NCBI GenBank assembly: GCA_044892525.1
Contig: CM097885.1
Coordinates: forward strand, 127,410,001 to 127,474,000
Direction of reading: 5' to 3'
DNA length: 64,000 nt
From: Schmidtea polychroa
Lineage: Eukaryota
A program made the translations under genes and the position numbers. The notes below the pieces were generated by a model. It was not told where the DNA came from, did not search any database, and saw only the letters and a program-made list of their open reading frames with translations. Positions within the stretch are counted from its first letter, which is position 1; each line of letters starts with the position of its first letter. Below are positions 1 through 38,018 of this stretch, piece after piece.

Positions 1-345
1 TGGATAAGTGTCTTTCCTTGTAACTTGATTTAGCTTCCGATAATCTACGCAAAATCGTAAGTCTCCATCTTTTTTCTTAACTATCACTATTGATGAGGAG
101 AATGGTGACGCGCTATCTCGAATTATTCCAAATTCCTTCATTGCTGTAATCTGTCTATCGCTTTCATCTTGATGAACGTAGGGGATTCTGTATGGCTTTA
201 TTTTTATTGGAGTTTCGTCTAATAACGGTATTTCATGCTCAATTACATTGGTTAAACCCAAATCATATTCGTGTTTGGCAAAGATATCTCGGTATTTCCT
301 CAACAGTTTTGTGAATTCCTTTTTCTGCATCTCATTTAAATCATT
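1..345 (-). CDS. Reverse transcriptase N-terminal part, truncated by the window edge
   Basis: [14 protein letters not shown]...HEIPL...PYRIP...[36 protein letters not shown], typical Gypsy RT. Confidence 0.95.
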
Positions 346-3300
346 GCTTACCACTTCAGGCTCCTTATACACCTTGACGTTTCTTGGTATTTTACAATTT
401 GTTTCAATAGACATTTTTGATAATTTTCCCAATTTTGTTTTTGGGTGTAGCTGAACCGGTTTTTTGCTGCTATTCGTTATATGGACTGGTACTATCTGAT
501 TTTCCACTTTGACAACTTCGTCACATATCGGTAAATCATATTTTTCGACTAGCGTTTGATTTGGTTCGAATATAAAATCACCATTATCCACACTCATGGT
601 ATTTGCACAATATACCATCTCCGATTGTGGTGGTATTATCAATGTCTGATTCACAAACACTTCACCTGCCCTGTGAATTATTTCTCCTGTTTCTCCTGCT
701 ATCAAATTACCTGTCTTTAAATCAAGTGAGACTCCGTCCAGCTGCTCTAATATATCCATGCCGATCAGACATCGTACTGGACTTCCCTTCATTATGAGCG
801 CATCGTGCGCTATTATTCGATCTCCAATATGGAATATGACGTTAAGTTGTCCAATTATGTTTAATTCATTTTTTGATAATGACCTCACTATTTCGTCGGT
901 AGGCTTCATTCGCATTTTTTCCTTCGCGTTTAATACATTTTCCGATACTATTGTGTGACTAGATCCCGAATCGACTAAAGCTTCCACTTTATGTTTGTTC
1001 ATTTGTATAAATATTCGGGGTTGCTTTCCTCTTTTTGTTAATGTCATCATTGAGTAGTTGCATGGTAAGCCTAACATATTTTTTCTCTCGATCTCTGCGC
1101 TAGAAGGCTCGATTCTCTCTCCTACCATTCCTTCACATTGTAATGCGATATTTTCCACTGGTTTCATCTCTCGTAATCGATCAACTGGATACACTGGTGC
1201 TGGTTGCATAAATGATTTTGGTATACACAGTTTTGTAAACGTGTCTACGCTACTCGCATTCAACAGTGGCTCTTTTAAGATTTGATAGGTTCTTAACGCT
1301 TCTTTATTCATTCCACTTAGTTCTTGATTGTCAACATATAACGGTGCACTATCACCCTCGTTGTCATTGTCATTGTTCTCGTCCCTTGAAGGGGTTGTAC
1401 TCGCGTAGCTCACCTTTTTCTTCTTTAATATTCGAGCCTTGAGTATCTCCAACTCCTGATATTGATGATGAGTAATGAAGAATCTAGCCAATAATGGTAT
1501 GCAACCAATTACTAGTTTCCACGACCAACCTGTGATCGCATATAATCTGTGTGTTGATAGGACCTGCGATATTATTACTTTGATTACAACACATATTACA
1601 TAAATTCCAATCAATCCGGCACATGCTTGTCCAATGAACATAAACTTTCCCCAGATCTTTTTCATTGTATTATACGTCGCTTTCTTGTAATGATCTGGAG
1701 TTAACAAATACTCATAATTTACCTTCCCACTTCCGCTTGGGAGAATTGTATCTACCATTTCCATTATTACTCTTTCTTTCTTTGATGGAAATAACAAGTT
1801 TCTGCGAGCTTCCTCAATGTCTTCGTTCGAGTAAATTCCACTTTGCGACAATTTTTCTAACGACGTAAAATTTACCAGATATTGTAATTCTGTCAATTCT
1901 AAGTTTTCCGGTGTCTTTACTTCTCGATGATCTGGTAATGCAATCCAAGATTCTGGTGTTAGTCTGTATAATGGTGCTAACAATCTATTGCACTGTAATA
2001 CTTTCGGTTTCGCGTCCTCTTCCAGTAAGATTCGTGTTACAGGCTCCATAAATCGCAACTTTCCATTTAAATTCACTGGTAACTCGTTGGTGCATTGGTC
2101 ATACTTTGTCAGTTTAACTGGTACCGCTTTACATTTATAGCTATATAGTGCTTCACCGAAAATTCTGGCGAACACTCCATTTTCTGCAATTAACATTGGT
2201 GCTACCAAATTAGGATTGGTTATAGCCATTGCCATCCGATTTCGGAGTATTTCTTTGTTGAGATTGCAATCATTTATAATAACTTCTCGGTACACATTTT
2301 CAACAGTATTTTGACCAAAGTGAAATAAATAATCTATTTTGTTATTAAAGTAATTTGTCAACTTAATATCTCCGGCATGTATGTTTGTTTGGGCCTCTGT
2401 AATCATCTTCTGAGATACATATATACCTTTATAATTTGTCTCATAGACACTTTGTCCACACTTTGTTTTAGTTTCTTTTCTCAGGAATCGCATCCCATCT
2501 TCCTCCGAGGTTGACATTAACACTGTTGGAGTATCTTTCATCCGTAGAGGTGTGATTCTTGTTGTTGTACTCGTTGCTGGATCCATTCTTATTTTCTCAG
2601 GCTTTTCCCTGATCTGTTCTCCCGTTATTTCTTTAAAACTCATTGACTTCAATTGCACTAAATTGCACTTTTTGGTATCGACATCGTACACCAAGATTGA
2701 TTCTCCTGTCTGACAGCTAGATTGTTTCATGTTGCAGAATGGATGTGTTTGTAGTTTACCAGTATCATCATCAAATGATCCATCAAATTCTCTTAATTCT
2801 GACATGTACTCTTCCACAACCACGGCTTTGTCAATTATAGCATCGTCTACTTTGTATGGCTCGCCTTGGCAATCACCATTCGACTTTATTATCCCTCGCA
2901 CGGTTACAGTCTCACGGATTTTGTGGTTAAGCTTTGCTTGTAGTTTGAGATCTGCATTGATTTTCAACTGTCCTGTTTGAAAGGCTGCCAAACAATTCTC
3001 TGGAATTATTTCTATCGGTCTAGGTATCGATTGCATTTTCACCATCGATGAGTGACTCCATTTTCCACAATAAAATACAAAAGTAGTTCGTTTCACTGTA
3101 CACTCTCTCACCTTTGCTCGTCGAAATCCCGATTCTTGATATACATAATATTTTACTGGATTTGTCACTTTAAATTTTACTGGATATGCATCCGAACACT
3201 CTGCTACGTTTACCAACGAATATACTCTTCCCATTTCGGTTTGGGAGCAGTCGTATGCCACCAATGAATTCGTCGTGTTTATTATTCCCAATAACATAAT

Positions 3301-6300
3301 AACAGAAATCATCAACCATGGAAATGCGAGTTTTCCCTTTTTCCTCACTGTCTCGGTTTTTGGGCTCTCAGCCTTTTGTATCAAATTTTCCCATCCGCCA
3401 TTGTTTGCGATCCACCTAGCCAAATATTTATTCGTCATTTCCGTAGCTTTCTTTATCAATGATTTTGAACTGTCATTTTCCAGACAACCATAAATACCAA
3501 TCTCCACTATTATATAGGCTAACGCTGTCAATATTACATCTCGATCTAACTCAGTTCGTGTTAGGTCCTCAATCACTGCTTCCTCACAAAATTCCTTTTC
3601 TTCATAATTTCTTTTAATTATCGACGGTAATCTCCTCTTTAATTCCGTTGCCAATCTTTTTACAACTCTTTCCTCCCCCTCCGAAGTATCATCTTCTGTT
3701 TCAGTTTCATCTAACAAGTACAATTCCGTAACTAAACTTTTTAATATTCGTTCAGTCTCGTTTGATTCATCTAAACGCTCAGTTTCGCTCGATTTATCTA
3801 AACTCAAAGATTCAATTTCCGCATCATTCTGTTTTTTCCGACATATCGCAATGTCATTTTTCGTTTCAACGAAGTTCTCTTCGCTCTTCATCTCATCTAT
3901 GCTCGGTAGTACCCTATTATCGGTGCTCATTTCCTCGATATCCCTTGCAACTTCATTTTCCGATCCCATTTCCTCATTTTCCATTGTTTCTAATCTCTGC
4001 AATTCATTAATTTCTTGATCAATTTCTCCTGGGTCATCTACAACTTCAGTTTTAATCTCCACATTATTATTATCCATTTCCTCATATAGAGGCCAAAACG
4101 GTACTATTACCGCATCTCTTTCCATTTCATCACTTTGTTTTGTTGCGTACACATTATTAATACAATTTGGGTTACATCCGTAGTTTAATAAATATTCGTC
4201 ATCATCCAATTCTCGTCCTTTGAACGTCAACACGATAATTCCTTCATTACCTAATATCTCCGCTGCTTTTTGTCGTATTTTCTTTGCTTTTACACTCCAA
4301 TGTTCCTGATAATATTCAATCCTTTGATCCGCAATATTTAACGCTATTATCAAAGACTTCGCACTATCGTCTGCCGCCTCATAATCATGTCCTAGTTTTC
4401 GGATTACCTCTTTTAGTTTTGCCTGATAACTCGTCGGTTTATTCGTATACGGTACGATGCATTCAAACAACCCTTCTTTCATGTCTCGATCCATTTCGAT
4501 GCTCATTATGAAGTCGATACTCGCATTAATTTTATCTCTATTCCCTGCATACAGGGTATCTTGTAAATCTGCTAGAATCTTTTCCCAATTTTGTCTGTCT
4601 GAATTCAAAGTATTAACAGCATTAATAACATTTACTTTATTTTTCCAGCCTGGTATCAGACCGCAATCTACTAAGTACTCTTCGTCTTCCAGACATCGAT
4701 TTTCGAATTTTAATTGCACTTGCCATCCACTGTATTGACGCAGTATTCGCTCCTTTAACTCTCTGATTTGTCCGTAGGCGTTTAAACGGAATTGGCACTT
4801 CACATTATCAAGTCCCGTCGTTTCCACTATGATATCAGCTAAATCCCTTGTTGACCGTAAAGCCTTGCCAAACCTTTGCATTTGTTTAAGTATCTCATCG
4901 TCTCTGTTTCCTTTGAATAACTTTGCACATAAATTTATGGCTCTCTTTAGTTCGCTTTGGGTTAGTGACATCACACTGAGTTCTGCGATCCATCGTTTCA
5001 ACTGGGAGTTGTCAGTTTCCATTTTCTCAAGCCATTTTTCAACTCGGGCTAACAGTGCAGTTGGATTCTCATCTGAAGCGATATTTCGCACTTTCGTGGC
5101 AGGTTTTCCCTCACCTTCTGACACGGTTCCAATTATCATATGAGATTCAGTTTCCTCATCTGATTCAAATTTCGCCACTAGTTTGTTTAGCTTCTGTCGC
5201 ATTTCTCGAAATTCCTTTTCCATTTTGTCTTGAAATTCCTCTCTCTGAGCATATGTCATGTTACTGGTGTTTGGCATATCTTCTTGGAATCTGATTGATT
5301 TCTTTAAGATAGGTCTGCTGAATCTTTCTGAGTTCCTTGGGCATGATCGCGCCATGTGGCCGTATCCCTTGCACGAATGACATTGGATCTGTCCATTTGT
5401 ATTCACTTTGTCCCTTTGTGGTGAAGGTGACGTTGACGATGACCTTGATCTGGTAAAACAGTTTCTGCTAATATGCCCTTTCTTTCCGCATCGATAGCAT
5501 TCGACATCACTGCTGATCCGCCTGTTTTCTGTGAATCTCTTGTTAGGGCTGGGATTTTTCCCATATTTGAACCAACATTGATTTGAGTAGTGTCCAGACT
5601 TTTTGCAATGTTCGCATTGAGGATTATTTACCTGTCCATTTGATTGTACGTTCATGGCTGATCTACTGGCTTGAAATCTATTATTTGGTCTCAAAATTGG
5701 ACTACTGATCTGATTTATTTTCTTTTCATCCCATGGTGCTCTCACAGGCGTAATTGATCGCTCACGTCTCTCCACATTAACTCCAAAAGCATCTGATCTT
5801 TTTGCACTTTTTAAATTCAGCTCTATCTTCATGGCTTTCTTCACGAGCTCATCAAAATTGGAAAAATCCACATAACATAGGGCTTTTTTGATTTCGGAGT
5901 GGACTCCGGTTATAAACTGATCTTCTAATAGCTCTTTAACCTGCTTGGCCATATCTGCTTGGTCTGGTTTAACTTCAAAGGCTTTATCTGCTAAAGTGGT
6001 CAGATGATAAGCAAACTCACTGACCGATTCATCTGGACCTTGAACTCGATTATAAAATTTCTGTCGCATGATTCTTTTGATATCTCCACCAACCAGTTTC
6101 AGTGCCATTGCATCCTTCAATTATGTCCAATCATTGCCAACATTTCGTTTGTCGACTTGCTGCCAGGCTTCTCTTGCCGCACCTTTCAGATAGAGTGGGA
6201 ATCTCTGAACCATAATGGCTTGTGTCCATCCGTATGCTGAGGCGTACATATAATAATCTCCCATGAAATCTGCAAATTCAACAGGGTCTCCTCCATATTG

Positions 6301-6378
6301 ATTGACGGGTAATTTCTGGCAACTTGCGAAATCAATCATCTCTCTATTGAGAGGCATCACAGCATTATCATTTGCCAT
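1..6378 (-). CDS. Single Gag-cargo-Env-Pol polyprotein frame, 2126 codons in window, open at the window edge, one in-frame TAA at 6121-6123
   Basis: Every triplet in the frame 6120 to 1 was checked and no stop was found (2040 codons). ATG at 6378 (MANDNAVMP); next ATG after the stop at 6108. Missing from the ORF track because it has no stop inside the window. Confidence 0.95.
720..1035 (-). CDS. Retropepsin-type aspartic protease domain
   Basis: [15 protein letters not shown] (catalytic Asp codon 970-972) and downstream [11 protein letters not shown]. Confidence 0.92.
1470..3264 (-). CDS. env: Chuvirus-like (Jingchuvirales-type) envelope fusion glycoprotein, about 600 aa
   Basis: Starts LVAYDCS after a signal-like segment. 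Contains [85 protein letters not shown] and the membrane region [30 protein letters not shown]...YAITGWSW. Motif order matches chuvirus-like glycoproteins as I remember them. Confidence 0.88.
3265..3756 (-). CDS. Bcl-2-family-like domain plus C-terminal hydrophobic anchor/signal segment
   Basis: BH2-like [14 protein letters not shown] (WIANNGGW at 3391-3414; Bcl-2 has LHTWIQDNGGWDAF). Upstream [30 protein letters not shown] sits at BH1/alpha5 spacing but lacks NWGR. A BH4-like helix [15 protein letters not shown] and an acidic loop precede it; hydrophobic [17 protein letters not shown] follows. Confidence 0.7.
4141..4353 (-). CDS. Ubiquitin-like domain 2 within the polyprotein (71 aa)
   Basis: LIIALNI...[14 protein letters not shown]...[20 protein letters not shown] matches the ubiquitin [19 protein letters not shown] signature and resembles domain 1. 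No Gly-Gly. Confidence 0.6.
4621..4836 (-). CDS. Ubiquitin-like domain 1 within the polyprotein (72 aa)
   Basis: DIIVETTG...[10 protein letters not shown]...[22 protein letters not shown] aligns by eye with ubiquitin QIFVKTLTG...TIENVKAKI...[22 protein letters not shown]. No C-terminal Gly-Gly. Confidence 0.65.
5341..6378 (-). CDS. gag: Gag region: capsid-like domain plus three CCHC zinc knuckles
   Basis: Capsid-like [11 protein letters not shown]...[13 protein letters not shown] and [16 protein letters not shown]...QFITG. Knuckles [14 protein letters not shown] (5575-5616), [14 protein letters not shown] (5458-5499), [14 protein letters not shown] (5341-5382). Confidence 0.92.
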
Positions 6379-6611: not shown

Positions 6612-6629
6612 ATCACGTCGGGCTCACCA
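6612..6629 (-). promoter_or_regulatory. Primer-binding site complementary to the 3' end of tRNA-Trp
   Basis: Minus strand TGGTGAGCCCGACGTGAT. The plus strand reads ATCACGTCGGGCTCACCA versus the metazoan tRNA-Trp 3' end ATCACGTCGGGGTCACCA (one mismatch, reference from memory). Confidence 0.85.
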
Positions 6630-6636
6630 GAATATA

Positions 6637-7696
6637 TGTTGGGTTTTGGGTTATTTCTAGTCGGTTCTCTCTGACTCCTGGTGTTCTTTAAATTAAAACA
6701 ATGAACGACCCAACGTATATTGAAACAACAAGTTCACAATTTATTATCACGCTACAATTACCAATCAAAGTTTTATACGATTCTCCGCTCGGCGTTGATG
6801 CTTTGCCAACAAACAATATTCACCTTTTGTTCCTTTAGTTCTCCCGACTCTCTTTTTCCTCGGTTTCTCTTTGGTTTGATCCCTTTCTGCCTTTCCGTAT
6901 TCTTAATTCTATTTCTTCTTTTCCCTACTTCCCTAAATTCGTTTTTTACCTCTCGACTATTCTCGATTCTTCTTACCCTACCTGAGGCAAAATGCCGATT
7001 TTCTCTGATTTTCCCTTTGCTTATATACTCCTCGAAATCAGGATGACAAATGGTTATTGCCGAGCCAATCTTTCGTTTGACATTTGCTCCTACGTATTTG
7101 CTTCGGCTGTCACCCATAATGGTCCAACGAATCCAGATAATTAATGGCCCTATCGATCTTCCTACGCGCGCTATCTTCTCCTTACTCTTTTCCCATTAAT
7201 CATTGTGTCAAGCTAATGGGCCCAAATCTTCCTTTTGTTTGCCTTTCTTCTTGTTTACCCAGCTCGGGTTTCCTCTATCTCTCGGGTTCTCCATTGGCTC
7301 GGGTTTCCCATTAGCTCGGGTTTTCCATTAGCCAATTAATTAATTAATTAACGTTTTCTGTTTTCATACATTTGAATGTTTTTCGACCCTTCCTAACCAT
7401 TTTCTGATAAATCTCTAATCATCATCTTGTTGACCATTAGCTAATCTATACCTGTCCCGTTTTTCCCATTCGATTTCGATGATTTTTCCATTTATTGATT
7501 TTTCTCGGATTTCCGGATTCTCGCCTTTCGTAATTGCTTTTTGCATTTTCTAATACTGTTTCCATCACACTTTCCTTTACTATTGATTCTGTACACGATC
7601 CCGCTTTTATTTGCCTTTTTTCCTCGCTTACTTTCCATTTGAATTATTATCCTAAATTTTATTTAAATTTTTAATTTTAATTTACAGACCTCAACA
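6637..7696 (-). repeat. 5' LTR, about 1060 bp
   Basis: Termini TGTTG...CAACA directly upstream of the PBS. TATAAAA at 6777-6771, AATAAA at 6745-6740, four ACCCGAG-core repeats at about 7260-7335. The second LTR is outside the window, so the boundaries are inferred. Confidence 0.75.
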
Positions 7697-9689: not shown

Positions 9690-10009
9690 TCTGCTACTGA
9701 ATCAAACTTCCTAATAGGAAAACGAATTTATTCGAATAAAAATGTAAATATTTCAATTCTTTAATCAAAGAGAAATTAACAGTTCATAATTAACCTTTCT
9801 TATTTATTCGTTTAAAATGACATAAAATAAAAATTTTTATAAAATTCTTAGAATTTCCAAATATAAAATGACGCAATAATATATACTAAAAATAGAATGA
9901 CAGATTGAATTATAAAAAGTGAAATGTTTTGTAAAATAGACACAAACAATATAATTGTCATTGCAAATTTTGCTGTTGCTATAAAATTACCAAAAATATT
10001 TAATTAATC

Positions 10010-13000
10010 ATGATATTTATCATTGTAAGTTTTCTCCTGTTCGGAAATTCTTTGGGCGAAAATATCGAGAATATTCTCGCTCCAGATATCAAGACCTTCA
10101 ATTGCAAGAATTTCAACATAAGCTGCTTACAAAATGGTAATTTTTTTCAATAAAATTAATTTATATATCTTTATCAGATTGGAATAAATGTGAAAAACGG
10201 TGTAATTCGTTTGAAGGTTAGGAAATATTTATTTTACATTTTTATTGGAGATTTAGGATATCCTTTATATGAAATGATGAATAATCGTAATTATATTTTA
10301 TAGTATAATTGATTTATAACCAAATTTAGTGAACGCCAAAATGAAAATGAATAATTACGGTAAATTTATAATTAATTAAATTTTATTAAATATAATAATA
10401 GATGAGGAACGACAGTTTTCAGAATTTCAAGATAAAATATTTTCTTTTCGTTTGAAGATGAACGAACTTTTTTTCCCTTTAGAAAGTAAATATTTAAATT
10501 GAATTTGTGAAGATGCTAAAAAAACAAACAAATATTATAGGGGTAACAGAAAATGTTCAAATTAATTAAAATTTCAATATTAGGACTGAAAATACAAAAA
10601 TTATTATTATTCAAGGAAAAAGTGGAAACAACTTTCAGATAAAAGTTTAAAAAAATTTAATAATTTTGAATTCGTCTTTTGATAGTGTTGGCCAATAGTA
10701 GTTTTTATGTTTAAATTTTCTAGGGTTGCTGAATAATCATTATTTATTTATTATAATTTTCGTTATAATTTTAGAAAACACCTCGGTAATTTTTTAGGAT
10801 TAACGAAATTTTCAGAGCTTACATTCGCAATATAGTGTTGTCAGTTCATATTCGCCCACTTTTTATAACTGCTACACCTTTGAAATCACAGCTTCGTAAG
10901 TCTCAAAAATCTAACATCAGACCTATTTCATGTTACTAAAATGTTACAAGATTCGTTCAAGAACTCATTGCAAAGATTAGCCGCCGAGACCTTTTATATC
11001 AAAAAACTTAAACCGTCTATCAACATTCAACTAAATTAATATTTAATTGGATTTATAATTTAAAATTAAAAAAATATTTAAAATATAAAAAACGGTTTTT
11101 TTATAAAATAAAATATTAAATAATTTAAAATTTAATTAAATTACAGAATTTAAAATTTTTAAAAAATAGGAAATATTATTTGGGTATTTAAAATAAAATA
11201 TAAATAGAATATAATTAAACCAATAAATTTATTATAAAATACGAAATAAATTTATTATCCCCAAACAATAATTATTTAATGTAATAATGATCAAATTCTA
11301 CCCTATCTTTGTAAAGCAACCAAAAAATGAACCCTACTAAGACATAGTCTGGTGTCAGTGGATTTTTTCGCATGGATTTCTTGTTTCCTAAAATCACAAC
11401 ATCTTAAATATTTAAAATTTATTAGTTTTATCTTTTATCAAAATTTGTTTATACTTAAATATATTGAAGTTGTTGTAACTGATCGAAACCCGTATAAAAT
11501 GAATAGATTTATTAATATGACTAATAAATCCAACTAATAAATTAATTATATTATTTATTAATTTTGATCATTAATTTACTTGTTTTATTTTAGAACTTAA
11601 AAGAAAATTACAAATAGTGAAAATGGAGCGCGAATTCTTACATCAACTTCAAGGTTTATTTTAAATTGTTTAAATTGTTACATATGATTAGTTATCGTAT
11701 ATGATCATTCAATGTTTTTACTAGATTTATCATCGTTTTTTTTCGTTATGGAAGAGTACAAATGATAAAATTTAAGTTTTATATTTAAATAAAACTTAAT
11801 ACAAAAAAATGATACAAAATTAATTAAGTATATAAAAATAATCTAAACAATTTTCAACTGGTGAAAAAGTGTAAATCAAATAATTTTTACGTAACTAGAA
11901 AATTAAAACCAATTAAATAAATTAGAAAAGTTGTTTTAAAATTTTAATTAATGCAATAAAGGGAACTAAATTCGATTATTGATAAAACATGAATGAAAAT
12001 AATAAAATTAATTTATTATTAAGAGAATATTGAAATCATTAAAAAAATGAATTAAAATATTAAACTAAAAATACTAAACTAAACTGAATAAAGAATAAAA
12101 TCTGTCCTTCTGAAAATATCAATATTTGACATTGAAAAACTTCTCAAATGTATTGTGTTTTAATAATATTGTAAAAAGATAGTATTTTATTTGAAATAAA
12201 TTATTAGAAGATCATTATTTTATGGACGTGACAAATATAAAATTCACGGTAACTAATATGAAGTATGATCAGACTACTAGGAAAACTTACAAATTATATG
12301 AGGTTTTATTGATAAAAAATTAGTTTCAGAATTGAAATCCAACCTTTAATATCTTTTTGAAAATGTGTCATTATAACATCTTTGTTGTACCTATTAAATA
12401 CCAATCACAATTTATTTATCTGCGTTTCTTTTAACCGAAGTTACATATAAAATCTAACTTCACCAAAATTAAACTACTTGTGCTGAGAATGATTTTTTAA
12501 CAAGATCTGATTTTAGAGGGTAAGAGGAAAATAATTGCGTAATTTTTTTTCTTAAAGTAAATTTTAATATCGTTGGGTCTTGTTATTTGATCAGCAAAAC
12601 GACGATTCAGATTTAAAGTTTTGCAAAACTTGGTGGTGGTCACAGATTTTGAACTGTTAACAAATAAACCAAAATCAATAAAATAAAGGAAAATATTAAT
12701 ATATCATATATTATATCAATTACTTGAAATGACAGGTATACCACAAGTACAAATGCAAATTATTAATAATATTATGCCGCCAAACATATTGGAAGTATAG
12801 TTGTGAGTGCCTCATAGGGTGGATCCATAAATGCAAATCAACTGAACAATGGAGTATATAAATCCAAAATGATAGTAATCGAAGGAATTTAGATGTGCAC
12901 AAAGAAGAAAATACGTTATCAGAGTGAAATAAGTTGTGCTTTTTTCCTAAGTTACTTGGATAAGTATAAGTGACATCCCAGTCACAAAAAAAACGTATTT

Positions 13001-16000
13001 CGGAATTATATTAAATTATATTAAATATCACAAAACTATAATATTTGACGTATAGATAAAGATTTTGGCACATTTAATATATATTTTGATGCATTTTTGT
13101 TTTTATTATTTTTGGATTTATTGGTAGTTCAGAATTTCCAACCGCCGTTCCAAGTTTTGCCTAAAGTTTTTCTTACCGAAATATTAATAAAGCTCAGAAT
13201 TTCAGAATATTTTAATATTTTGATTTTCAAATTTATATAATTTTTTAATTATGAAGATTATCTTAGGAAAGGAAACTAATGATACAGAATTAGAACCAAT
13301 AGAAAAAGGTTAGTAAAATATTTTATATCATTTAAAATTAATTTATAAACTAATTTTATTAACAAATTAGTTTTGATCATGGGACAGGGTACATTTTCTG
13401 AATCAATGTTTCCAAATCTATTTTTAAGGGACGCTTGATGATTTAAATCAAATACACCATGAATTGATCTACAAAGAATTAGTGGTTTTATATTTAAAAT
13501 TATTTGACTTTTTTAGATTTCAAAACTATCAAATAAAAAAAATAGTGAAATAAATCTTTCAAAAATAAAATAATATAAAAACTTCACTATGATACACAAA
13601 AAGAAAGATCTAAAAATATAAATAACCAAAACCGAATAATAAGTAAAAATTTATTAAAATGTGCAAAGGAGTTCCTTTACAAATCCAATTCTAGAAAAAT
13701 TCGAAATTTTATTATGCGAATTTTTATTTTAATTATCGGTAATATAAATCAAGAATTCTGATTAAAAACGGTAATTTATAAACTAAAAAATCCTAATCAA
13801 TTCATATTACATAAATTTTATAAATTTACAATTTATTTAGTTATAAAATTAGTAATAAAAAATTCAGCTCAAAAATATCCCACACAACACAAATTATTTT
13901 AATAATAAGGAAATCTAATTTATACAAAATATTAATGTTGTTCCTAAAATATTTCAGTAATCACAACAATAAATACATAATTCGTTTGTTTTATTTTGTA
14001 TTTTGTCTCCTTATACTCGTACGATGTGATTTCTCTAATAAATAAACAAAAATTCGTAAATCGAATTTATTTTTGTAAACAGAGACTGTGAATGTTTTTC
14101 TAAATTACTTCGTAAAAAGAGTGTAAATAATTAATTCATAAAAGAAATCAATTTAATTTAAAAAAAATTTCTGAGTTTAACAGCCATAGTGACAAGCTAA
14201 GTGACAAGCTAATAATTAAATTTCATTGGATTTATTCATCTCATGGAAGAAAAACTTCATTTATGAAAGACAGATTGAAGAAAGATCCCTATAAAATAAG
14301 CAAATCACAATATTTAGCTGCCATAACAGATACCACTGAAAATAGCTCAAATATCTTAAGAAGTTTTCAAAAACTGTGATCATCTTTTTATAAATTCAAA
14401 TGTGTTAATATTTTTGAAAATATGTTACAATGAGTCAACTCAGAAAATGTGAAGTACAAAAACGAGCAGCATTTAAAATACGAAACGAGGATCAAGTCTA
14501 ATTAGATACAAATTTAATAATAAAAGATAACTGAATATTTTACTAATAGTGAATTTAGAAATCTATTTTTACATTACTATAGACATATTTTACATTTACT
14601 TTCTAGTGGATATAATAAATATTTTAATTTTTCAATTATAGTTAGTTTAACTTATTACACGTGGCTGTAGACACACGTGTAGTATACAAATATTGTTTAC
14701 TTTTCATTAATAGATCTTTTGACATATTGTTATTTAATCTTGTTACATGGTAACCACGCTTTCAAACCAAAAAATTGAATGGGAATCCTGCCACAGTTGA
14801 AAAAATATTCCATTGGAGATGATCTAAAGGCAATTTATGTTGAAGATTAAATGTTATTTCTCAATAATTCAATTGGCCAACATCCAATAAAAATGAATTT
14901 TCGGAACATATTTGAATGAACCTTGTCGAAACAAATTTGACCAAATTCACTATGAAGAAGACCATATGAAAATTATTAACATATCTTCTAAATTATTTTT
15001 TAAATCCGGTTCAAAAGTTAATAATAATTCCAAGTATTTATTATATGACAGGGGTGCCCATAAGGTCGATCGCGATCTACCGGTAGATCGCGAAGGATTT
15101 TTTAGTAGATCTTCATAAAAAAAATATTTTTTATATAAATTTAGATTTTATATAAAATTTCTGTTTTATGCTTAAATTTTTTGCCAATTTTCATGTTCTG
15201 TGTTCCATTTCTATGGTAATACTAAATAACATTTTTTAATTTTGATTTCACCATTTCCAAAATGTTATTTAGTTTAATTTAGTTTAATTTAATTTTGTTT
15301 ATTTAGTTAAATTTAATTTTGGTTGGTGTAACAAAGTGAAAAATTTTCTTAAGCTTTTTTGTTAAATTAATTTTGTTTAAAAATGCTAAATAAAAAAATG
15401 CTAAATAAAAAAATGCTAAATAAAAAAACCAAGACTTATCATTATAGCGAAGAAATGGAGAAGGAGTACTTTTTTGTAATGATTAAAGGTAAATGTTGTT
15501 GCTTAATTTGTAAAGCTACTATTTCATTACCAAAAAGAGGGAATTTGAAAAGGCATTTCAAGACAATTCATAAGACTTTTGCAGTTGATTATCCACTTGA
15601 CAGTGAACTACGCAAGTCTAAAATCATGGAACTGAAAACATGCATTTCTTTTCAACAGTCATTTTTTACGAAGCTAACATCCAAATCAAAGTCAGCTACA
15701 GCTGCATCTTTCCGAGTAAGCTACATTCTGGCAAAAAATAAGAAATCTTTTAGTGATGGAGTAATTGTAAAAGAAGCATTTTTAGAAGCGGCAGAATCAT
15801 TATTTTGTGATTTTAAAAATAAATCAGATATAATTTCTGCTATTACTGATATGCAATTGTCCCGTAATACAGTTACACGGAGAGTCCAAGAAATAAGTTC
15901 CAATTTAAAAAATCAGTTAATGTTAGACAAAGAAAATTGTACCGCATTTTCATTGCAAGCAGACGAATCAACTGATGCGGCTGATATTTCGCAGCTTATA

Positions 16001-19000
16001 ATTTTTATTCGAATGGTCTTTAAAGATTTTTCTACGAAGGAAGAATTATTAACAATTATACCACTCAAAAGTAAAACTCGAGGTGAGGATATATTTCAGA
16101 ATTTTAAAGCTTATGCCAACAGCATTCAGCTCCAAATTTGTAAGCTTGTATCAATAGCAACAGATGGCGCACCAGCTATGACAGGGCGTCACAACGGATT
16201 TATAGCATATTGTAGGAATGATTGATTTTGAATTTGATTTCCTAAGTTACATTTTTTTATAATAAATAGTTATATACTTTAATTTTCCATATTTTGACAT
16301 ATATTTGTTTTATTGTGATGAATTTATTGCATTGTAGGTAAATATTATGTAAGTATTAAAAAAGTAGATCGCATGCACATTTTGGATGTGAATGTAGCTC
16401 TCCTAGAAAAATTAGTGGGTACCCCTGTTATATGACATATTGTATAATTTTAAACAAATTTTCCACGTTGAATAAAATATTTTCAAAACCATTTATCAAA
16501 TTTTCAATATTTAAAATATATATATTTAAAAATTTTAGATTAATGAAACTTCTTTTCTAAAAAGCTATTTTAATTTTTAATTTAAAAATTTCAACTTATA
16601 AAATCCAATTTAAAAATTATTTAAAAGTTATTTTAATAGTCAATTATTTACAATTTAAAATTATTTTGATAAATCATTGAAATATTTAACTCTCAGCTGA
16701 AAACATCTCACAATAGATATTACAAAAATAAATTTACAGTAATTTTTTAATAAATTTATAAATAAATTTACGACAAAAAATTTGTATATAAAGAATTAAT
16801 TTCACACTGATTAAATCAAGCTTTTATTTATTCTTCTGTAAATATTTTAGAAATAGAAAAACAATTAGAAAAGTGCAAAGGTAATTAAATATTTATCTTA
16901 ATTATATTAATTTTGAGAATTTGTTCAAAATTTTTCAAAATGATTTTTATTAATAATTTGCCCAATGAACAATCATTGTATCATTTCTAGTCTTGTAAAT
17001 ATATTTTGTGTTGCAATATATATCATTGTAAACAACTTGGGCACCTGCAACATTACAATAAAGGAAATTATCTTCACATGGTTGTTCGTATCGTTAATGT
17101 TAGAAGATTTGGAAATAATTAAAATTATAGAATTAAAATACTTTTGGAATTACACAAAATATATGAAATAAAAATATTTAAAAAATTATAAATTATCAAA
17201 ATTAATTACAAAAAGTAAAAATAAATATTTTTCCGGGGGGGGGGCGTGGTAGACGAATGAAGTTTCAAAGGCGTATAAAATAATTTTAAGTTATGATTTG
17301 ATTTTTAGAAGATGATACCCATCGGGTATTTACCCAGTTCTGTGAAATTCAATTTAATGAAAATATCGTTATTCTGTTGCGATTTGTTTTAATTATTTAA
17401 TTGCTGAACCCGAGGAGTCAGGATGAAAGCAAAGTTCCTATTGACAATTTTTTTTAATATCAAAACAATACTATACCATAGGAAACAATATTTATAGAAT
17501 ACATATAGATGTATTAAAAAAAGATAAGTAATAATTTACAAAATAAAATTCTGTGACATAACTAATGATTCTGACTAACAAATGCAAACTCCAAAAATAT
17601 TTATTTTATCAATTTATTAATTTATAATTTGTCATAATTTTGTGACATTGGCAATATAATTCGTAATAATTTATTGTTTATAACTATTTAATATTCCTAA
17701 TTATATATAGATAGTGATTTTATATTGGAAAGTTTTGAGAGGATAATTATAAAAAACGATTGTTTCTTGATAACATAGTTAAATCAACTACAGAAAATCT
17801 TTAATTTACCTCTCCCCGAAATAAAAATAATACTTCAATATTATGACAATAATTATTTTATAAATAAAAAATCTCAAATCACTTCAAGTGCTTTAACAGC
17901 TTTGAAACTGCACAACAGCTACTTATATTTTTTATTTTTGTGATAAAACTAACAGTTATTATGCATGAATTTTGCTGACCAAATTATGAAATTTTGTNNN
18001 NNNNNNNNNNNNNNNNNNNNNNNNNNNNNNNNNNNNNNNNNNNNNNNNNNNNNNNNNNNNNNNNNNNNNNNNNNNNNNNNNNNNNNNNNNNNNNNNNNNN
18101 NNNNNNNNNNNNNNNNNNNNNNNNNNNNNNNNNNNNNNNNNNNNNNNNNNNNNNNNNNNNNNNNNNNNNNNNNNNNNNNNNNNNNNNNATTGGAAAAAGC
18201 AGAAAAGTTGATAATTTTCAACCGACGACATACATAATAAACCCTTCTTCCTTCAACATCAGAAATGCTGAAAATTGCAATCAAATTAAAATAGCAATTG
18301 CTAATTGGACATTAGAAAGTAGAAAATTGTTTTTGAACAACAAATAATATTGACAATTAACGCCCCTGCCACTTAAGATGAAGAATAATAAAAGTTTTTC
18401 TATACAAACTAAGATTTTCCTCAGTCAAACCACCCAAAAAATTTCTAATCTAAGAAGAATTGTAAATTCAGTAGCTGATAATTACAATACAAATTAAACT
18501 CTAATTCCTGTACTTATAATTATTGTTATTAAGTAAAAACTTTTCAAACCAGTATTTGTGTTGCTATATATATATATAACATCCTGGACAAAGAATTAAT
18601 TATATCAAGTTATTAGTTCCATAACAAGCTTACATACAAATATATTTCCTAGTCATACTTATCAAATTGTCATGAGTTTGCTACATGTCAAAATCTTTTT
18701 ATATTATCATTTCATAAGATCCATTTAGTAACCTTTCCCATGTTATTTCAACTAAAAACTAAAGCAGTTTGTCAATTGAAATAACCTGATTGTCAAATGT
18801 CACAGATATTAAAATTTGTCACATTTGGTCAGTACAATGTCCACGATTATGTGGAAATAAATGCTTTGTGGTTTCAATAGTTGTTATTATATTATTTTCA
18901 ACTTTAGATACCAGAAAGCATTAAATACATGTTGGTATTGGTGGCTTAAATATGATATATTGATATAAATTTCTGCAATAAAATTAATTTTAATGTGAAA

Positions 19001-19407
19001 TCAAAACCACTTACAATACATCAATTTAAGAAAATATTTATTTTTTCGAAATATGTATCCCCCCCCCCCCCAGATTCACGGAGACCCCTCAAACGACATT
19101 ATTTGTAGCATAAAGCATGACACATTTTTTAAATATAAACTTCATTTACTACTTGAAAATAATTGTCTTTAAGGATTTAATGCATTTAATTTATACTTTT
19201 TTAGGACTTTTAAGACTATTCGAAAATTCTGATGAAACTATTGAAGGTAATTCTTATAATAATTTAAATTTTTGCACATTGTTAACTATTAAGAAATTCA
19301 ACAAGAAATTATATTTAAAAGAGGCAAGAAAATTATTTATGTTGAATATTTTTATATTTAGATGAATGAAGAATTGCTTGATGTTCTTCAAATGCCACCA
19401 ACTGAAG
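10010..19407 (+). CDS. Multi-exon secreted orphan protein gene, paralog 1 (incomplete exon set)
   Basis: Signal peptide MIFIIVSFLLFGNSLG. Exons 10010-10136, 10178-10216, 10257-10286, 10330-10359, 10402-10485, 11594-11653, 13267-13308, 16851-16880, 19205-19246, 19294-19323, ~19372-19407. First introns are 40-43 nt. Each exon has an equal-length counterpart in paralog 2. Joining the distal exons to this gene is inferred. Confidence 0.65.
15049..16427 (+). mobile_element. hAT (Charlie/SPIN-like) internally deleted element, 1379 bp
   Basis: TIRs CAGGGGTGCCCA / TGGGTACCCCTG; perfect 8-bp TSD TTATATGA; subterminal GTAGATCGC repeats. Confidence 0.92.
15383..16225 (+). CDS. N-terminal 280 aa of a GTF2IRD2/ZBED5-like hAT transposase, C-terminal half missing
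   Basis: CCCLIC...RHFKTIH zinc finger, KKSFSDGVIVKEAF, LSRNTVTRR, FSLQADESTD, LVSIATDGAPAMTG. Stops before the CxxH motif and the catalytic Glu. Confidence 0.85.
   Translation: MLNKKMLNKKMLNKKTKTYHYSEEMEKEYFFVMIKGKCCCLICKATISLPKRGNLKRHFKTIHKTFAVDYPLDSELRKSKIMELKTCISFQQSFFTKLTSKSKSATAASFRVSYILAKNKKSFSDGVIVKEAFLEAAESLFCDFKNKSDIISAITDMQLSRNTVTRRVQEISSNLKNQLMLDKENCTAFSLQADESTDAADISQLIIFIRMVFKDFSTKEELLTIIPLKSKTRGEDIFQNFKAYANSIQLQICKLVSIATDGAPAMTGRHNGFIAYCRND
17998..18188. other. Assembly gap; others at 20925-21067, 24018-24161, 48167-48310, 48757-49053, 51396-51551, 53482-53676
   Basis: Runs of N. Confidence 1.
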
Positions 19408-19411
19408 GTTT

Positions 19412-19412
<1 letters not shown>

Positions 19413-19482
<70 letters not shown>
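19413..19482. repeat. (AAT)n microsatellite
   Basis: About 23 perfect units. Confidence 0.97.
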
Positions 19483-19483
<1 letters not shown>

Positions 19484-20502
19484 TTTATTATTGTAAGTGG
19501 GATATTTAATTATTTATTTAAATATTACTTAATGTTAATTTATGTTTTTAATTATCAATGTATAATAGTAAAGTATGATGAAAGAATAAATTTTGAAAAA
19601 CTGCTCAATATATAAAACCAATATTTCTCCAAAAATTAATAATATTACACGAATAATATATTTTAACAATTTTCAAACAATTCATTCTAATTCGAACAAT
19701 TATTAATAATGCAAAATATGATAATAATAGTCAACAATAAGTCAATTATATTTTCAGTTAATATTCCGTCAAAATTCTTATTACACTGGAAAATTCCTAA
19801 TAAGGACCAATTTCACGTATTTAATTTAATACAAGCATTCAATAATAATTTTTTTAATTAATCTTTATCAAGTAATTATTACAACATTTCCTGAGGAATA
19901 ACACTTTTAATAATAAATTTGAATACATGACCACTCAATTACCACTGCTGAACTGATAATGATAAATCGATCTGGTTACTCTCTCACTTTGACTCAAAAG
20001 TTTTAACACTCTATATCTGTCTGCACTGAATAATAACATCTATAATATTAAAAAACTCAAGTCGCACAGGGCGCAAAATTGGAATGTAAAATTTTTTTAA
20101 TGTTACCAAAAAATAACAAAATATAAATAAAAGAAATTATCAAATGGCCTGCACGAAAAAACGACACACTAACTAATCTATCTTTAACATTGCTGATTGG
20201 ACTGGTCCATTTGCGTGCCTTCGTAGGTGTGTATTTTGAAAAATGTTAATCCACAAAATGGTCTCCTGTCATTTTTTCAATTGGCAACAGATTTTAAAGA
20301 GCATTACTACCTATTATAATAGCTGGAGATGAATATATAGTTAATAATCTCAACATGAATATTATAATTATTATAGTAGGCTGATTTGAATTCAGGTTTT
20401 AGGGGCGCCAGATATATGAACCGCACAGGGCGCAATAATGTCTTGTTACGGCCCTGGTTACATCATTCAAGATCGTAATTTTTCGGCAAATGCGCGTTAT
20501 AA

Positions 20503-20751
20503 CAGGGGTTCTTAACCTTTTCAAACTTATGGACCCCATAAATATATAATTGGTACCGACGGACCCCTGAAATGTTAAAAAATTAATAAATTGATAGTAA
20601 AACACATACATTTTTTAATAATTATTTATAAATTTGTTTATTCAGCTTCAAACAAAAATAATAAAGGTTTTTTGTAAATAGTGCCGCGGACCACTCGGAA
20701 CCCGTTCGCGGACCCCCTGGGGGTCCATGAACCCCAGGTTAAGAACCACTG
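20503..20751. mobile_element. hAT/Charlie-type MITE, 249 bp
   Basis: TIRs CAGGGGTTCTTAACCT / AGGTTAAGAACCACTG; 8-bp TSD CGTTATAA. Confidence 0.92.
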
Positions 20752-21077
20752 CGTTATAACATCAATTTTGAGAAATATTTGTAATTTCATATTTTACATT
20801 TTTATTGATTCCATTTTATATTAAATATAGCTTAAATGGAATTAAAATATTCTTTATCTTTAAGATAACATGGTCCTGATGTGGTTGGTTATGAACATAG
20901 ACAAGTATCAAGGTAAATGCTTTANNNNNNNNNNNNNNNNNNNNNNNNNNNNNNNNNNNNNNNNNNNNNNNNNNNNNNNNNNNNNNNNNNNNNNNNNNNN
21001 NNNNNNNNNNNNNNNNNNNNNNNNNNNNNNNNNNNNNNNNNNNNNNNNNNNNNNNNNNNNNNNNNNNGTAGCAGAAT

Positions 21078-21259
21078 TTATTATTTAAAACAATGAAATG
21101 ATAATTTAAGCCTTTTGCTGCAAATAATGTATTTAATGAAAAACTTTCGACTATAAGATAGTCCTTGTCAAAGATTATCTAATAGTCGAAAATTTTTTCA
21201 TTAAATACATTATTTGCAGCAAAAGGCTTAAATTATCATTTTACTGTTTTAAATAATAA
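21078..21259. repeat. Near-perfect inverted repeat (about 85-bp arms, about 12-nt loop)
   Basis: TTATTATTTAAAACA...TTTCGACTAT pairs with ATAGTCGAAA...TGTTTTAAATAATAA. Confidence 0.9.
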
Positions 21260-22049
21260 TAATAATAATAAATAACAACCAAAATACAGTAGAACCACGA
21301 TTTTCCGGGTCTCGATTATCTGATATTTCGGTTTTCCAAAAAAACATTTAACCTACTTCAATAAAATGTCTAAACAAGGCTGATGAAATGTTTACAGTAA
21401 AATAATAAGCGGATCGTTTGTTCATAAACAATGATATGATTAGAGCTGATCACATTACCGAGTATGATCACACTACCGTTATGACGCGACACTAGACATG
21501 AACGTCTTCATGGCATTAGGTGGTCTATTGAATCCTGAGAATGCCAGATTTGGATGTGAATTGAAATATCTTATGACTACAAAGGAAAATGAAGTTCAGA
21601 ACTTGATAACTCAAAAAAATAACAACCAAATGCAATGAGGCACTGGTCATTGAGCAGGGAGTCAAAAATGGTTGGTTAGTCAAGTATGATGAAAATTGTA
21701 TTTGTAAATAATTGAAGCAATAACTTTATTATTTAAAAATAGAAAAATACGAATGTTTTTACTGGGAAAAGCGGTAGTCTAGGGTTATGCTTTTTTAAAA
21801 ATCTAAACGCCTGGGATTGGAAATGGTGAATATTTATGTAAAATGGAGGAAAATTACCTCCTTTTTGAAAAATTTTAAAAACCCTCTAACACCCCTTAAA
21901 GGAAACGAAATCCATAAATCAGTTCGGAATAATATGTATTATTAAAGTACATTTATATTAATGAACTTCAAGTTGAGGTATTTATCACTTTTGATCTTCA
22001 CAAATATAACTTTCATTTTCTTCACGGCTCTTTCAGTGACAATATTGGA

Positions 22050-22345
22050 TCGGGTAACATCCAGAACTGAGGGCTCCTTAATTCAATGGGGTTTAAAGCA
22101 CTTTATCGCTTTATGACATGCAAATTTTGAAAGAGCAGATTGCAGCACATCATAGGTATCGTCTCGGAAATGTTGAATGGAGAACCAGACAGAAGCCCAC
22201 TCCATGGAAATGAAATTGCAAAATAGCTGAGCACTATATGAAGGCAGAAGAAAATAAGCAATTAGAGTAAATGCTGCGCGGGAGTTCCATCTTGCGTTAT
22301 TTAGTGAGGGAAGCTTTCGCCATTTTATGATCGGAAATTTATTTG
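22050..22345 (-). pseudogene. Transposase fragment, hAT-related (hATm-like)
   Basis: RKLPSLNNARWNSRAAFTLIAYFLLP...NIVTERAVK. Confidence 0.5.
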
Positions 22346-22359
22346 ACTTCTGATAAAAT

Positions 22360-22660
22360 TTATATGCTTCACACAATTAAAGAGGAGTTTGAAGTCGTCC
22401 CTCCAACTAGGGCTTTCGGTCGGTCGAAACCAATGAATATTAAAGCGACAATGGATAAATTATTTCTCAAGAAAACACTTAATAGCTACGAATTGCCTGG
22501 AATAATACCACCCAATTTAAAAGAAGTATTAGAGAGTTTAAAGACAATTCAACCGACTTCAACTGAGAGTAATCGAATTTTCTCTTTGGCTGGTAATTTC
22601 TGTAGTATTAAAAGACAATTTGTCAGGCAGCAGCATTAATGTGCTTCACTTTTTAAAAGG
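22360..22660 (+). pseudogene. hAT transposase C-terminal dimerisation fragment
   Basis: LESLKTIQPTSTESNRIFSLAGNFCS. Confidence 0.65.
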
Positions 22661-22814
22661 TTTTTACGCAAATTTGAGTGATGTTTAGTTGTCAAAATGT
22701 CTTTACTCTGCTTTCTGTATACTATTATTTTTATATATTTATATGTATGTATTGTGACGCGCATAACATTAAGTATAAAATAAATTTTTGGTTGTTTTTA
22801 TGCAAAAGATCCCG

Positions 22815-23660
22815 TCAAGAAGGCGATTAAACTGCACAGATTAAGTCATTTTGAAGGATATCAATTAAAGTTCTTGACTGAAAAATTAGGAATTAATCTT
22901 TCCCCAACGAGGTAAAAGAAATAGCACAAAATTGTGGTAAATGTCAATCAACAGACCCCCAACCAGTAAATACCATTAAAGGGCGATTAAAGATGAAAGA
23001 TTCGTTGAAACGATTAGCCATCAAAGTGAAAAAATTAAGTCAAAGAAAATTTATAACAACCATAAATTTTGTTCATTCTAAATTTACAATTTAACGAGAA
23101 ATTTAAAAAATTAAAGCGCAGATGAAATATGTAAGAAATTGAAACAAGTATTTTTTGAAAGAGGACCGCTTGATGAACTTCTGTTTGATGACTATTTATT
23201 CTTAAGATCTGAGACTTTAAATCACTAATGAAAAACTAAAAAATTAGAACTGATTATAGATCCATTAACAGACCAGCAGGATGGTATTGTTAAGAGAAAT
23301 CACAACGCAATAAAAGTGGCGGACAAGCGATCAGAATTTTCGGTTCAAGGAGCAATTTACTGGTACAATGAATGTAACTCCAGTTAATGAATCATTCAGA
23401 CCGCCGGCAAATGTCATATGGCTTATGCCACAAGGCTTCAATTCAATGAAACAAAAAATATTGCCCAAGAAATTGAAAACGGTTTTCCATAAAAATGATA
23501 AAAATTGGATAAAATCTATTTACAATAAATCCTGTACATCTCCGTGGATTAGAGAAAGAATCATAAAGTTTATATCTCCTCATAAAGCAATTGTTGATTA
23601 CGGAATTGTAGCAATCCTACATCACATAGCTGATCTAAGACACAGGAATGAAGATTCGTG
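22815..23660 (+). pseudogene. Decayed Gypsy/Ginger-type integrase
   Basis: Zinc-finger remnant NCGKCQSTDP, DGIVKRNHNAIK (G-VER-N-T-K motif), AIYWYN and C-terminal WIK...CTSPW...ISPHKAIVD...HIADLR. Confidence 0.65.

Positions 23661-32250: not shown

Positions 32251-32340
<90 letters not shown>
32251..32340. repeat. (ATT)n microsatellite, inside a ~540-bp segment with imperfect inverted ends (about 31990-32530)
   Basis: About 30 ATT units. Flanks GATTTGTGTC...TTATTTCGAAAGTTT and AAACTTTCGAAATAA...GACACAAATC are inverted copies. Confidence 0.9.
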
Positions 32341-32343
<3 letters not shown>

Positions 32344-37846: not shown

Positions 37847-38018
37847 TATTTATTGATTTTTTTTTAGATTATAGGCTATGTTATATTTCGCAAACGGGTG
37901 TACACCAAACACCACTGAGATACGTTCTCTATTATAGAGAACGTATCTCAGTGGTGTTTGGTGTACACCCGTTTGCGAAATATAACATAGCCTATAATCT
38001 AAAAAAAATCAATAAATA
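37847..38018. repeat. Almost perfect 172-bp palindrome centred at 37933
   Basis: ...GGTGTACACCAAACACCACTGAGATACGTTCTCTAT-T-ATAGAGAACGTATCTCAGTGGTGTTTGGTGTACACC...; one indel in a T-run. Confidence 0.95.

Follow-up and report, generated by a model that had tools for sequence, protein, structure and literature searches.

Giant Gypsy-like retroelements named Burro were reported from the planarian Schmidtea mediterranea (Grohme et al. 2018; GYPSM1, Jurka 2007) and were re-annotated by Arkhipova and Yushenova in 2019 (PMC6431247). Elements of this type are among the largest retroelements known, and their oddity lies in a viral fusogen that is encoded in frame between gag and pol and is accompanied by ubiquitin-like (UBL) and Bcl-2-like host-interaction domains. 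In this work we analysed a stretch of 64,000 nucleotides (nt) from Schmidtea polychroa (GenBank assembly GCA_044892525.1, contig CM097885.1, positions 127,410,001 to 127,474,000), hereafter called the window, the left end of which contains a retroelement on the minus strand. The best explanation of this locus, to which we assign a probability of about 0.82, is that it represents approximately the 5' two-fifths of a Burro-type giant Ty3/Gypsy long terminal repeat (LTR) retroelement, of the kind resembling an endogenous retrovirus (ERV), in a planarian genome.

The published annotation of Burro gives an internal region of up to 25 kb, and a total size of more than 30 kb with the LTRs (PMC6431247). 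Its first open reading frame (ORF1) encodes 4,873 amino acids (aa) and opens with a Gag that bears three CCHC knuckles. A Ubi2/SUMO-like motif precedes BCL-2, and env lies in frame between BCL2 and the protease (PR); it matches the fusion glycoproteins of mononegaviruses and is, according to the authors, the first in-frame env found between gag and pol. A dUTPase-like motif follows between PR and the reverse transcriptase (RT), and the polyprotein then continues with RT, RNase H (RH) and integrase (IN), followed by BIR and ankyrin. In Burro-1, MATH_TRAF_C, AIR1 and Smc motifs were noted between Gag and Ubl, whereas ORF1 of the Dugesia tigrina element lacks MATH, so that this feature is variable among Burro-like elements. 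The same authors considered that the apoptosis and ubiquitination domains might serve to meddle with host systems.

Related arrangements have been published for other elements. Chary and Hayashi (eLife 2026; PMC13524379) described GAG-ENV-POL Gypsy elements with an Env of the herpes simplex virus (HSV) gB type in Platyhelminthes, Nematoda and Bryozoa, and a passage of that paper cites Sacco et al. 2022 (J Gen Virol 103:001739) on ERVs of nematodes in which env precedes pol. The Atlas viruses of hookworms (Belpaoviridae) encode one uninterrupted, intronless Gag-Pol-Env polyprotein (Merchant et al. 2022; PMC9094657). An earlier reading of the window, made by a model from the letters alone (the sequence-only reading), knew of no description of an architecture in which Gag, UBL, Bcl-2-like, Env, PR and RT parts are joined in one frame. 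Its novelty does not hold, as the same order was published for Burro (PMC6431247), gB-type elements with the order GAG-ENV-POL are known (PMC13524379), and so is a single Gag-Pol-Env polyprotein (PMC9094657). The combined architecture is already known, and the present element is a rediscovery of it.

A single frame from Gag to the start of reverse transcriptase

The giant frame is encoded by the minus strand; it opens at the gag ATG (6376-6378) and passes the left edge of the window, beyond which the element continues. The sequence-only reading had counted 2040 stop-free codons after a single upstream stop; this count is exact, and the frame was confirmed on the minus strand. With the base composition of the strand, which gives a stop probability of 0.076 per codon, the chance of such a stop-free run is about 1e-70, and the two remaining minus-strand frames contain 200 and 159 stops. 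The frame does not appear in the program-made list of ORFs, as had been remarked, because ORFs running off an end are not listed. The number of frameshifts in the window is zero, and the continuity claimed between Gag, cargo, Env, PR and the start of RT holds within it. The env and protease parts are unbroken, and gag carries one in-frame stop. Because of this stop the copy as it stands is probably non-functional, and the term "infectious-type", used in the sequence-only reading, describes the layout of the family and not this particular copy. Composition is uniform across the element, with a G+C content (GC) of 0.37-0.38 and no run of N inside it.

Relatives of the element were found in metagenomes and are used below for comparison. 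They comprise the proteins P0001-P0007, encoded on contigs L001-L005 of ENA ERZ25039515, and P0021, encoded on contig L006 of JGI 3300027940.

The gag part (5131-6378; minus strand, as for all parts of the element) comprises a capsid-like N-terminal region and three CCHC zinc knuckles. The knuckles, located at 5341-5616, match zf-CCHC in Pfam (E 3.5e-9) and display three C-x2-C-x4-H-x4-C motifs. The capsid part gave only a weak direct family match, to PNMA, and aligns by BLASTP with the gag ORF of contig L001, which itself carries Retrotrans_gag. Further along the frame, a retroviral-type aspartic protease with the D-S-G active-site motif occupies positions 733-1026 and matches the Pfam families gag-asp_proteas (E 2.9e-7) and RVP (E 3.6e-5). 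It is followed by a spacer (79-732) that is 37-39% identical by BLASTP to the corresponding region of P0001, P0004 and P0006 and that matches only Spuma_A9PTase, weakly, in Pfam. The first ~26 codons of RT (RVT_1; 1-78) are cut by the window edge; they were placed by an alignment to P0001 that reaches this edge, the RVT_1 domain of P0001 beginning at the matching position.

Upstream of the frame lies a putative 5' LTR of ~1.06 kb (6637-7696) with TG..CA-like ends. A motif resembling a TATA box lies near 7030, a 17-nt unit is repeated in tandem at 7262-7332, and at the outer end of the LTR the GC of 0.37 found inside the element gives way to one of 0.25 past position 7696. These bounds are tentative, since the window ends before the 3' LTR and offers no second copy for comparison; a search of the window for further copies of the element or for solo LTRs found none. 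Seven nucleotides past the putative LTR end, an 18-mer starting with TGG (6612-6629, read directly) resembles a primer-binding site (PBS). No tRNA gene was found in the window. Of the traits of Ty3/Gypsy elements, namely LTRs, a tRNA-type PBS and the pol order PR-RT-RH-IN, the window shows a putative 5' LTR, a PBS-like site and a PR placed before RT, with RH-IN and the 3' LTR expected beyond its edge; the earlier assignment of the locus to a retrovirus-like member of this group is probably correct.

The envelope glycoprotein and the cargo domains

Positions 1648-3255, which share their frame with Gag and PR, encode the ectodomain of a Monjiviricetes-type (gB-like, class III-like) fusion glycoprotein; the sequence-only reading had already recognized a viral fusion glycoprotein here. 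The match to PF24664 reaches an E-value of 9.3e-94. The ectodomain is ~535 aa long, contains 17 cysteines, lacks an R-x-K/R-R (furin-type) site and is 38-42% identical to the Env of P0001-P0007. When a profile of nine Env sequences was compared with the PDB, 22 of the 23 matches were to herpesvirus gB; all of them were weak (E >= 0.1), and they lend weak support to the gB-type label, which agrees with the published one.

The ectodomain is bracketed by two hydrophobic helices, both detected in a Kyte-Doolittle scan. The first (3256-3336) may act as an internal signal/anchor for Env, and P0001, P0004 and P0006 have an equivalent helix ahead of their Env. The second (1543-1647), which also has an equivalent in relatives, is the predicted stop-transfer membrane anchor of Env. 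It is followed by a presumed cytoplasmic tail and linker to the protease (1027-1542), delimited on the translation, for which no Pfam family match was obtained.

About 670-695 aa separate the last knuckle from Env, in agreement with the insert of ~690 aa of non-retroelement sequence noted before. This insert contains a module made of a helical segment of ~90 aa and a UBL domain of ~85 aa, present in two copies. Module 1 (4606-5070) gave a weak Pfam match to ubiquitin (E 0.0035) and shares homology with module 2 as well as with the modules of the relatives. Module 2 (4126-4608) was characterized by modelling and profile comparison. An alignment of nine module sequences, used as a profile against the PDB, matched ISG15 at an E-value of 8e-7, and ubiquitin was matched as well. 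AlphaFold2 (AF2) on this alignment predicted four helices and a beta-grasp fold, with a local confidence score (pLDDT) of 87.2 and a global one (pTM) of 0.71. Foldseek placed the model with ISG15, SUMO1 and ubiquitin (probability 1.0, TM-score up to 0.88, root-mean-square deviation 1.4-2.2 A). An exhaustive search with the cargo among 1.84 billion representatives returned seven matches, all of them UBL modules of related elements, and no cellular ubiquitin.

Next to the modules, an acidic low-complexity linker (3721-4053) was recognized on the translation; an iterative search in the local sequence set matched only the query itself. It is followed by a candidate Bcl-2-like domain covering the BH1-BH2 region (3352-3672), located directly upstream of the first membrane helix, which also takes the position of a Bcl-2 tail anchor. 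All 36 phmmer matches of this segment in the PDB belong to the Bcl-2 family. A profile of three sequences gave 125 matches in the PDB, of which the 60 listed are all Bcl-2 or Bcl-xL, the best with an E-value of 0.0014, over BH1-BH2. A G-G-W triplet is invariant among the three sequences and aligned to Bcl-2. The Bcl-2-like segment was also found in P0002, directly before Env, in P0021, where it closes a gag-cargo ORF, and in a fragment, P0009. Taken with the points against it given below, this evidence provides moderate support for a Bcl-2-like domain, the identity of which we regard as probable.

Relatives, working of the polyprotein and alternative explanations

A query combining cargo and Env retrieved seven proteins of one ENA metagenome at 32-42% identity, under a length rule that put Burro-size proteins of ~4,900 aa out of range; a search with Env alone returned metagenomic fragments only. 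In three of the seven proteins (2855-3108 aa), the PF24664 Env is N-terminal to PR, RT, RNase H and IN within one ORF, and these polymerase parts belong to Gypsy-type Pfam domains. In P0003 and P0005 a single ORF runs from Gag through the UBL module and Env to PR, and the UBL module is present in every relative that reaches upstream of Env. Contig L002 bears ankyrin repeats after integrase, as described for Burro. The division into ORFs varies: three relatives have a separate gag-UBL ORF that overlaps a (Bcl2)-Env-Pol ORF, and in two others a separate RT-IN ORF follows Gag-UBL-Env-PR. The sequence-only reading had named a search for copies with the same domain order as one check on its interpretation, and this order does recur in independent, diverged contigs. 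Because it is kept at 32-42% identity, we read the domain order as a trait of the lineage and not as a product of assembly.

The relatives also carry parts of their own. Located on L001 (19559-21613), on L002 (9624-16787) and in P0001, P0004 and P0005, these are two to four aspartic protease domains per element, one of which stands after integrase, C2H2 fingers between proteases, ankyrin repeats behind integrase and, on a separate ORF, an RNase_T-type exonuclease domain. A further ubiquitin-like copy is present near the C-terminus of the Env-Pol protein P0001 (residues ~2936-3015). Two contigs contain bacterial-type genes with a GC of 0.63-0.76 beside element sequence with a GC of 0.34-0.40, namely L001 at 1-5800 and L004 at 17000-24948 (MacB/ABC/YknX/TetR; luciferase-like, NAD-binding and MnhB). 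In view of this jump in GC, they are probably assembly chimeras rather than cases of horizontal transfer.

The order of the parts suggests how such a polyprotein could work. The 5' LTR would drive a full-length RNA, the reverse transcription of which would be primed at the tRNA-type PBS. One giant frame would then yield Gag, the two helix and UBL modules, the Bcl-2-like domain, Env, PR and RT, and presumably further parts including RH-IN. Of the two hydrophobic helices, the first would act as an internal signal/anchor that directs the Env ectodomain into the lumen of the endoplasmic reticulum, and the second would stop transfer, so that the protease and polymerase would return to the cytosolic side, where Gag also lies. 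The parts would be released from one another by signal peptidase and by the protease of the element itself. The products would include a Gag-UBL-Bcl2 protein, tail-anchored and cytosolic as is usual for Bcl-2, and an Env in the form of a type I membrane glycoprotein. The first helix would in this scheme serve both as Bcl-2-type tail anchor and as Env signal/anchor. The UBL and Bcl-2-like parts presumably target the ubiquitin and cell-death pathways of the host. We infer this topology, like the cleavages, the stoichiometry and the function of the cargo, from the sequence. A single-polyprotein topology would be coherent, because the two membrane helices bracket the Env ectodomain. As to the proposal that Gag, Env and Pol are made in equal amounts, Gypsy elements commonly have a single gag-pol frame, and equal synthesis followed by differential turnover would therefore have a precedent.

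Several observations weigh against the assignment to Burro or against parts of the scheme. The assignment is based on the published description and not on sequence identity to Burro-1 to Burro-4 or GYPSM1. A dUTPase-like domain was not found in the spacer between PR and RT, either by Pfam or by comparison of a single sequence and a four-sequence profile with the PDB; the published Burro call was made with HHpred, which is more sensitive than these searches. The MATH_TRAF_C, AIR1 and Smc motifs of Burro-1 were not found in the frame by Pfam at E <= 0.1. From the overall size of Burro, a longer LTR than the tentative one would be expected. For the Bcl-2-like domain, the Pfam match stays below the cutoff (E 0.018 with the whole frame, 0.0015 with the segment), and the cargo query found no cellular Bcl-2 relative at E 1e-3 among the 1.84 billion representatives. 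Its single-sequence AF2 model had a pLDDT of 61 and no significant Foldseek match, which is uninformative either way. Of the UBL-UBL-Bcl2 cargo seen by the sequence-only reading, both UBL domains stand, on profile, AF2 and Foldseek results, and the Bcl-2-like part is moderately supported by its sub-cutoff Pfam match and its all-Bcl-2 PDB matches; the fold comparison that had been suggested recovered the ubiquitin-like fold and was uninformative for the Bcl-2-like part. The passage of the products through a membrane-spanning polyprotein would be a plausible and topologically coherent route.

This last step is where an alternative has the most weight. The element could be the same and yet express Env, perhaps together with the Bcl-2-like part, mainly from a spliced subgenomic mRNA, in which case the in-frame position would be a side effect of compaction and the amounts of Gag, Env and Pol would differ. 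Retroviruses and errantiviruses generally make env from spliced RNA, and the relatives split the frame among several ORFs (three with a separate gag-UBL part, two with a separate RT-IN part), which indicates that the lineage can do without an uninterrupted frame. The frame of the present element is, however, open across every junction in the window, its two membrane helices would give the polyprotein a coherent topology, and intronless single Gag-Pol-Env polyproteins do exist in the Atlas viruses (PMC9094657). We consider splicing a serious contender, if on balance the less likely one.

The genomic surroundings bear on the nature of the host. Six mir-753 hairpins were found between 33566 and 38227; the minus strand carries three of them (33566, 34445 and 35495), as does the plus strand (35948, 36786 and 38166). 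They form a cluster in a ~5-kb inverted and internally tandem (triplicated) repeat block, with arms of up to 392 nt that are 92-97% complementary. Two of the six hairpins reach the Rfam gathering score and the other four fall just below it. We take mir-753 to be a planarian microRNA; a search of one literature collection found no confirming paper. A perfect 75-nt palindrome at 37858-38008 gave weak matches to mir-8536 and mir-5. The flanks of the element have a GC of 0.25-0.27 (~74% A+T), a composition that fits Schmidtea, as the genomes of this genus are reported to contain more than 70% A/T and abundant Burro elements (PMC11410931).

With these data a second alternative can be judged, namely that the element is a nematode ERV of the NERV type rather than a planarian Burro element. 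The abstract of the study describing NERVs is said to report a continuous gag-env-pro-pol ORF. Nematode ERVs with env before pol are also the subject of the passage in PMC13524379 that cites Sacco et al., and the Env found here does belong to the Monjiviricetes fusion family. Against this stand the mir-753 cluster and the A+T-rich flanks, as well as the three knuckles and a cargo of UBL and Bcl-2-like domains, all of them exactly as published for Burro. A nematode origin appears quite improbable.

A third alternative is that assembly created the joined frame by fusing a Gypsy element with a Bcl-2/ubiquitin gene of the host and with an endogenous viral glycoprotein. Such a chimera could be suspected from the two relatives on chimeric-looking contigs, but the composition is uniform and free of N runs across the element, the published Burro description has the same order, and the conservation of this order in independent contigs at 32-42% identity refutes the idea in practice, leaving it barely any probability.

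Other contents of the window and comparison with known systems

Outside the element, the window contains remnants of DNA transposons in the form of stop-free stretches, of the piggyBac type (DDE_Tnp_1_7, 56948-57913, minus strand, E 4.7e-39) and of the Tc1/mariner type (DDE_3, 40680-41180, minus strand, E 2.4e-16). Among them is a stretch with weak DUF4371 and Spin-doc zinc-finger matches (15371-16222, plus strand). A dispersed repeat of ~450 nt occurs in two direct copies (9927-10374 and 43052-43504), which are 72-86% identical and 33.1 kb apart. Long (TTA)n/(TAA)n microsatellites give inverted matches between 32250-32345 and 19405-19496. The seven runs of N in the window (1270 bases) all lie outside the element, at 17998-18188, 20925-21067, 24018-24161, 48167-48310, 48757-49053, 51396-51551 and 53482-53676.

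With the errantiviruses of Drosophila (gypsy, ZAM) the element shares a Ty3/Gypsy backbone with an envelope gene. Their env differs in being a separate 3' ORF located after integrase, of the baculovirus F type and expressed from spliced RNA. The Atlas viruses resemble it in the one-frame polyprotein, in being ERV-like elements of worms and in an Env borrowed from an RNA virus; they differ by a BEL/Pao backbone, a C-terminal Env, a class II fusogen similar to phlebovirus Gc, and the lack of cargo domains. NERVs are reported to combine a metavirus backbone with a glycoprotein captured from a negative-strand RNA virus and placed before pol, in nematode (Chromadoria) hosts, and we know of no UBL or Bcl-2 cargo in them. 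The GAG-ENV-POL errantiviruses share with the present element a Ty3/Gypsy pol, an env between gag and pol, a gB-type Env and flatworm hosts, whereas their GAG, ENV and POL are treated as successive ORFs, and UBL or Bcl-2-like cargo goes unmentioned in their description (PMC13524379).

The relatives from metagenomes, which measure at least ~15 kb, have Gag, the helix and UBL module, in some cases the Bcl-2-like segment, then Env, PR and RT-RH-IN. They differ in their two to four protease domains, their C2H2 fingers, their RNase_T-type exonuclease ORF and their other ORF division. It is conceivable, though we hold it to be rather unlikely, that the present element represents an undescribed Burro subfamily, without MATH and with a duplicated helix and UBL module, that its lineage reaches further in range and in time than the Dugesiidae, and that one helix is at the same time Bcl-2 anchor and Env signal. 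If this were true, the relatives at 32-42% identity in two unrelated metagenomes would mean that the gag-UBL-(Bcl2)-env-pol lineage extends, in breadth and in age, beyond the Dugesiidae planarians.

With Burro, finally, the element has in common a frame for a single huge polyprotein in which Gag comes first and bears three CCHC knuckles, a domain of the ubiquitin/SUMO type upstream of a BCL2-like domain, the position of the BCL2-like domain just before env (with moderate support here), an env in frame between BCL2 and PR that resembles the fusion glycoproteins of mononegaviruses, and PR followed by RT. Both have an AT-rich planarian host and cargo linked to apoptosis and ubiquitination. One difference lies in the helix and UBL module, which is duplicated in the present element as against one in the published description; the RH, IN, BIR and ankyrin parts of Burro would have their counterparts, if present, beyond the window edge. 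As descriptions of this layout date from 2018-2019, with an extension in 2026, the element adds no new kind to those known. What it adds is detail: the ubiquitin-like part is a conserved module of four helices and a beta-grasp domain, here duplicated; the probable Bcl-2-like domain sits directly on the signal/anchor helix of Env; the two membrane helices would make a single-polyprotein topology coherent; and diverged relatives with the same order are present in metagenomes.

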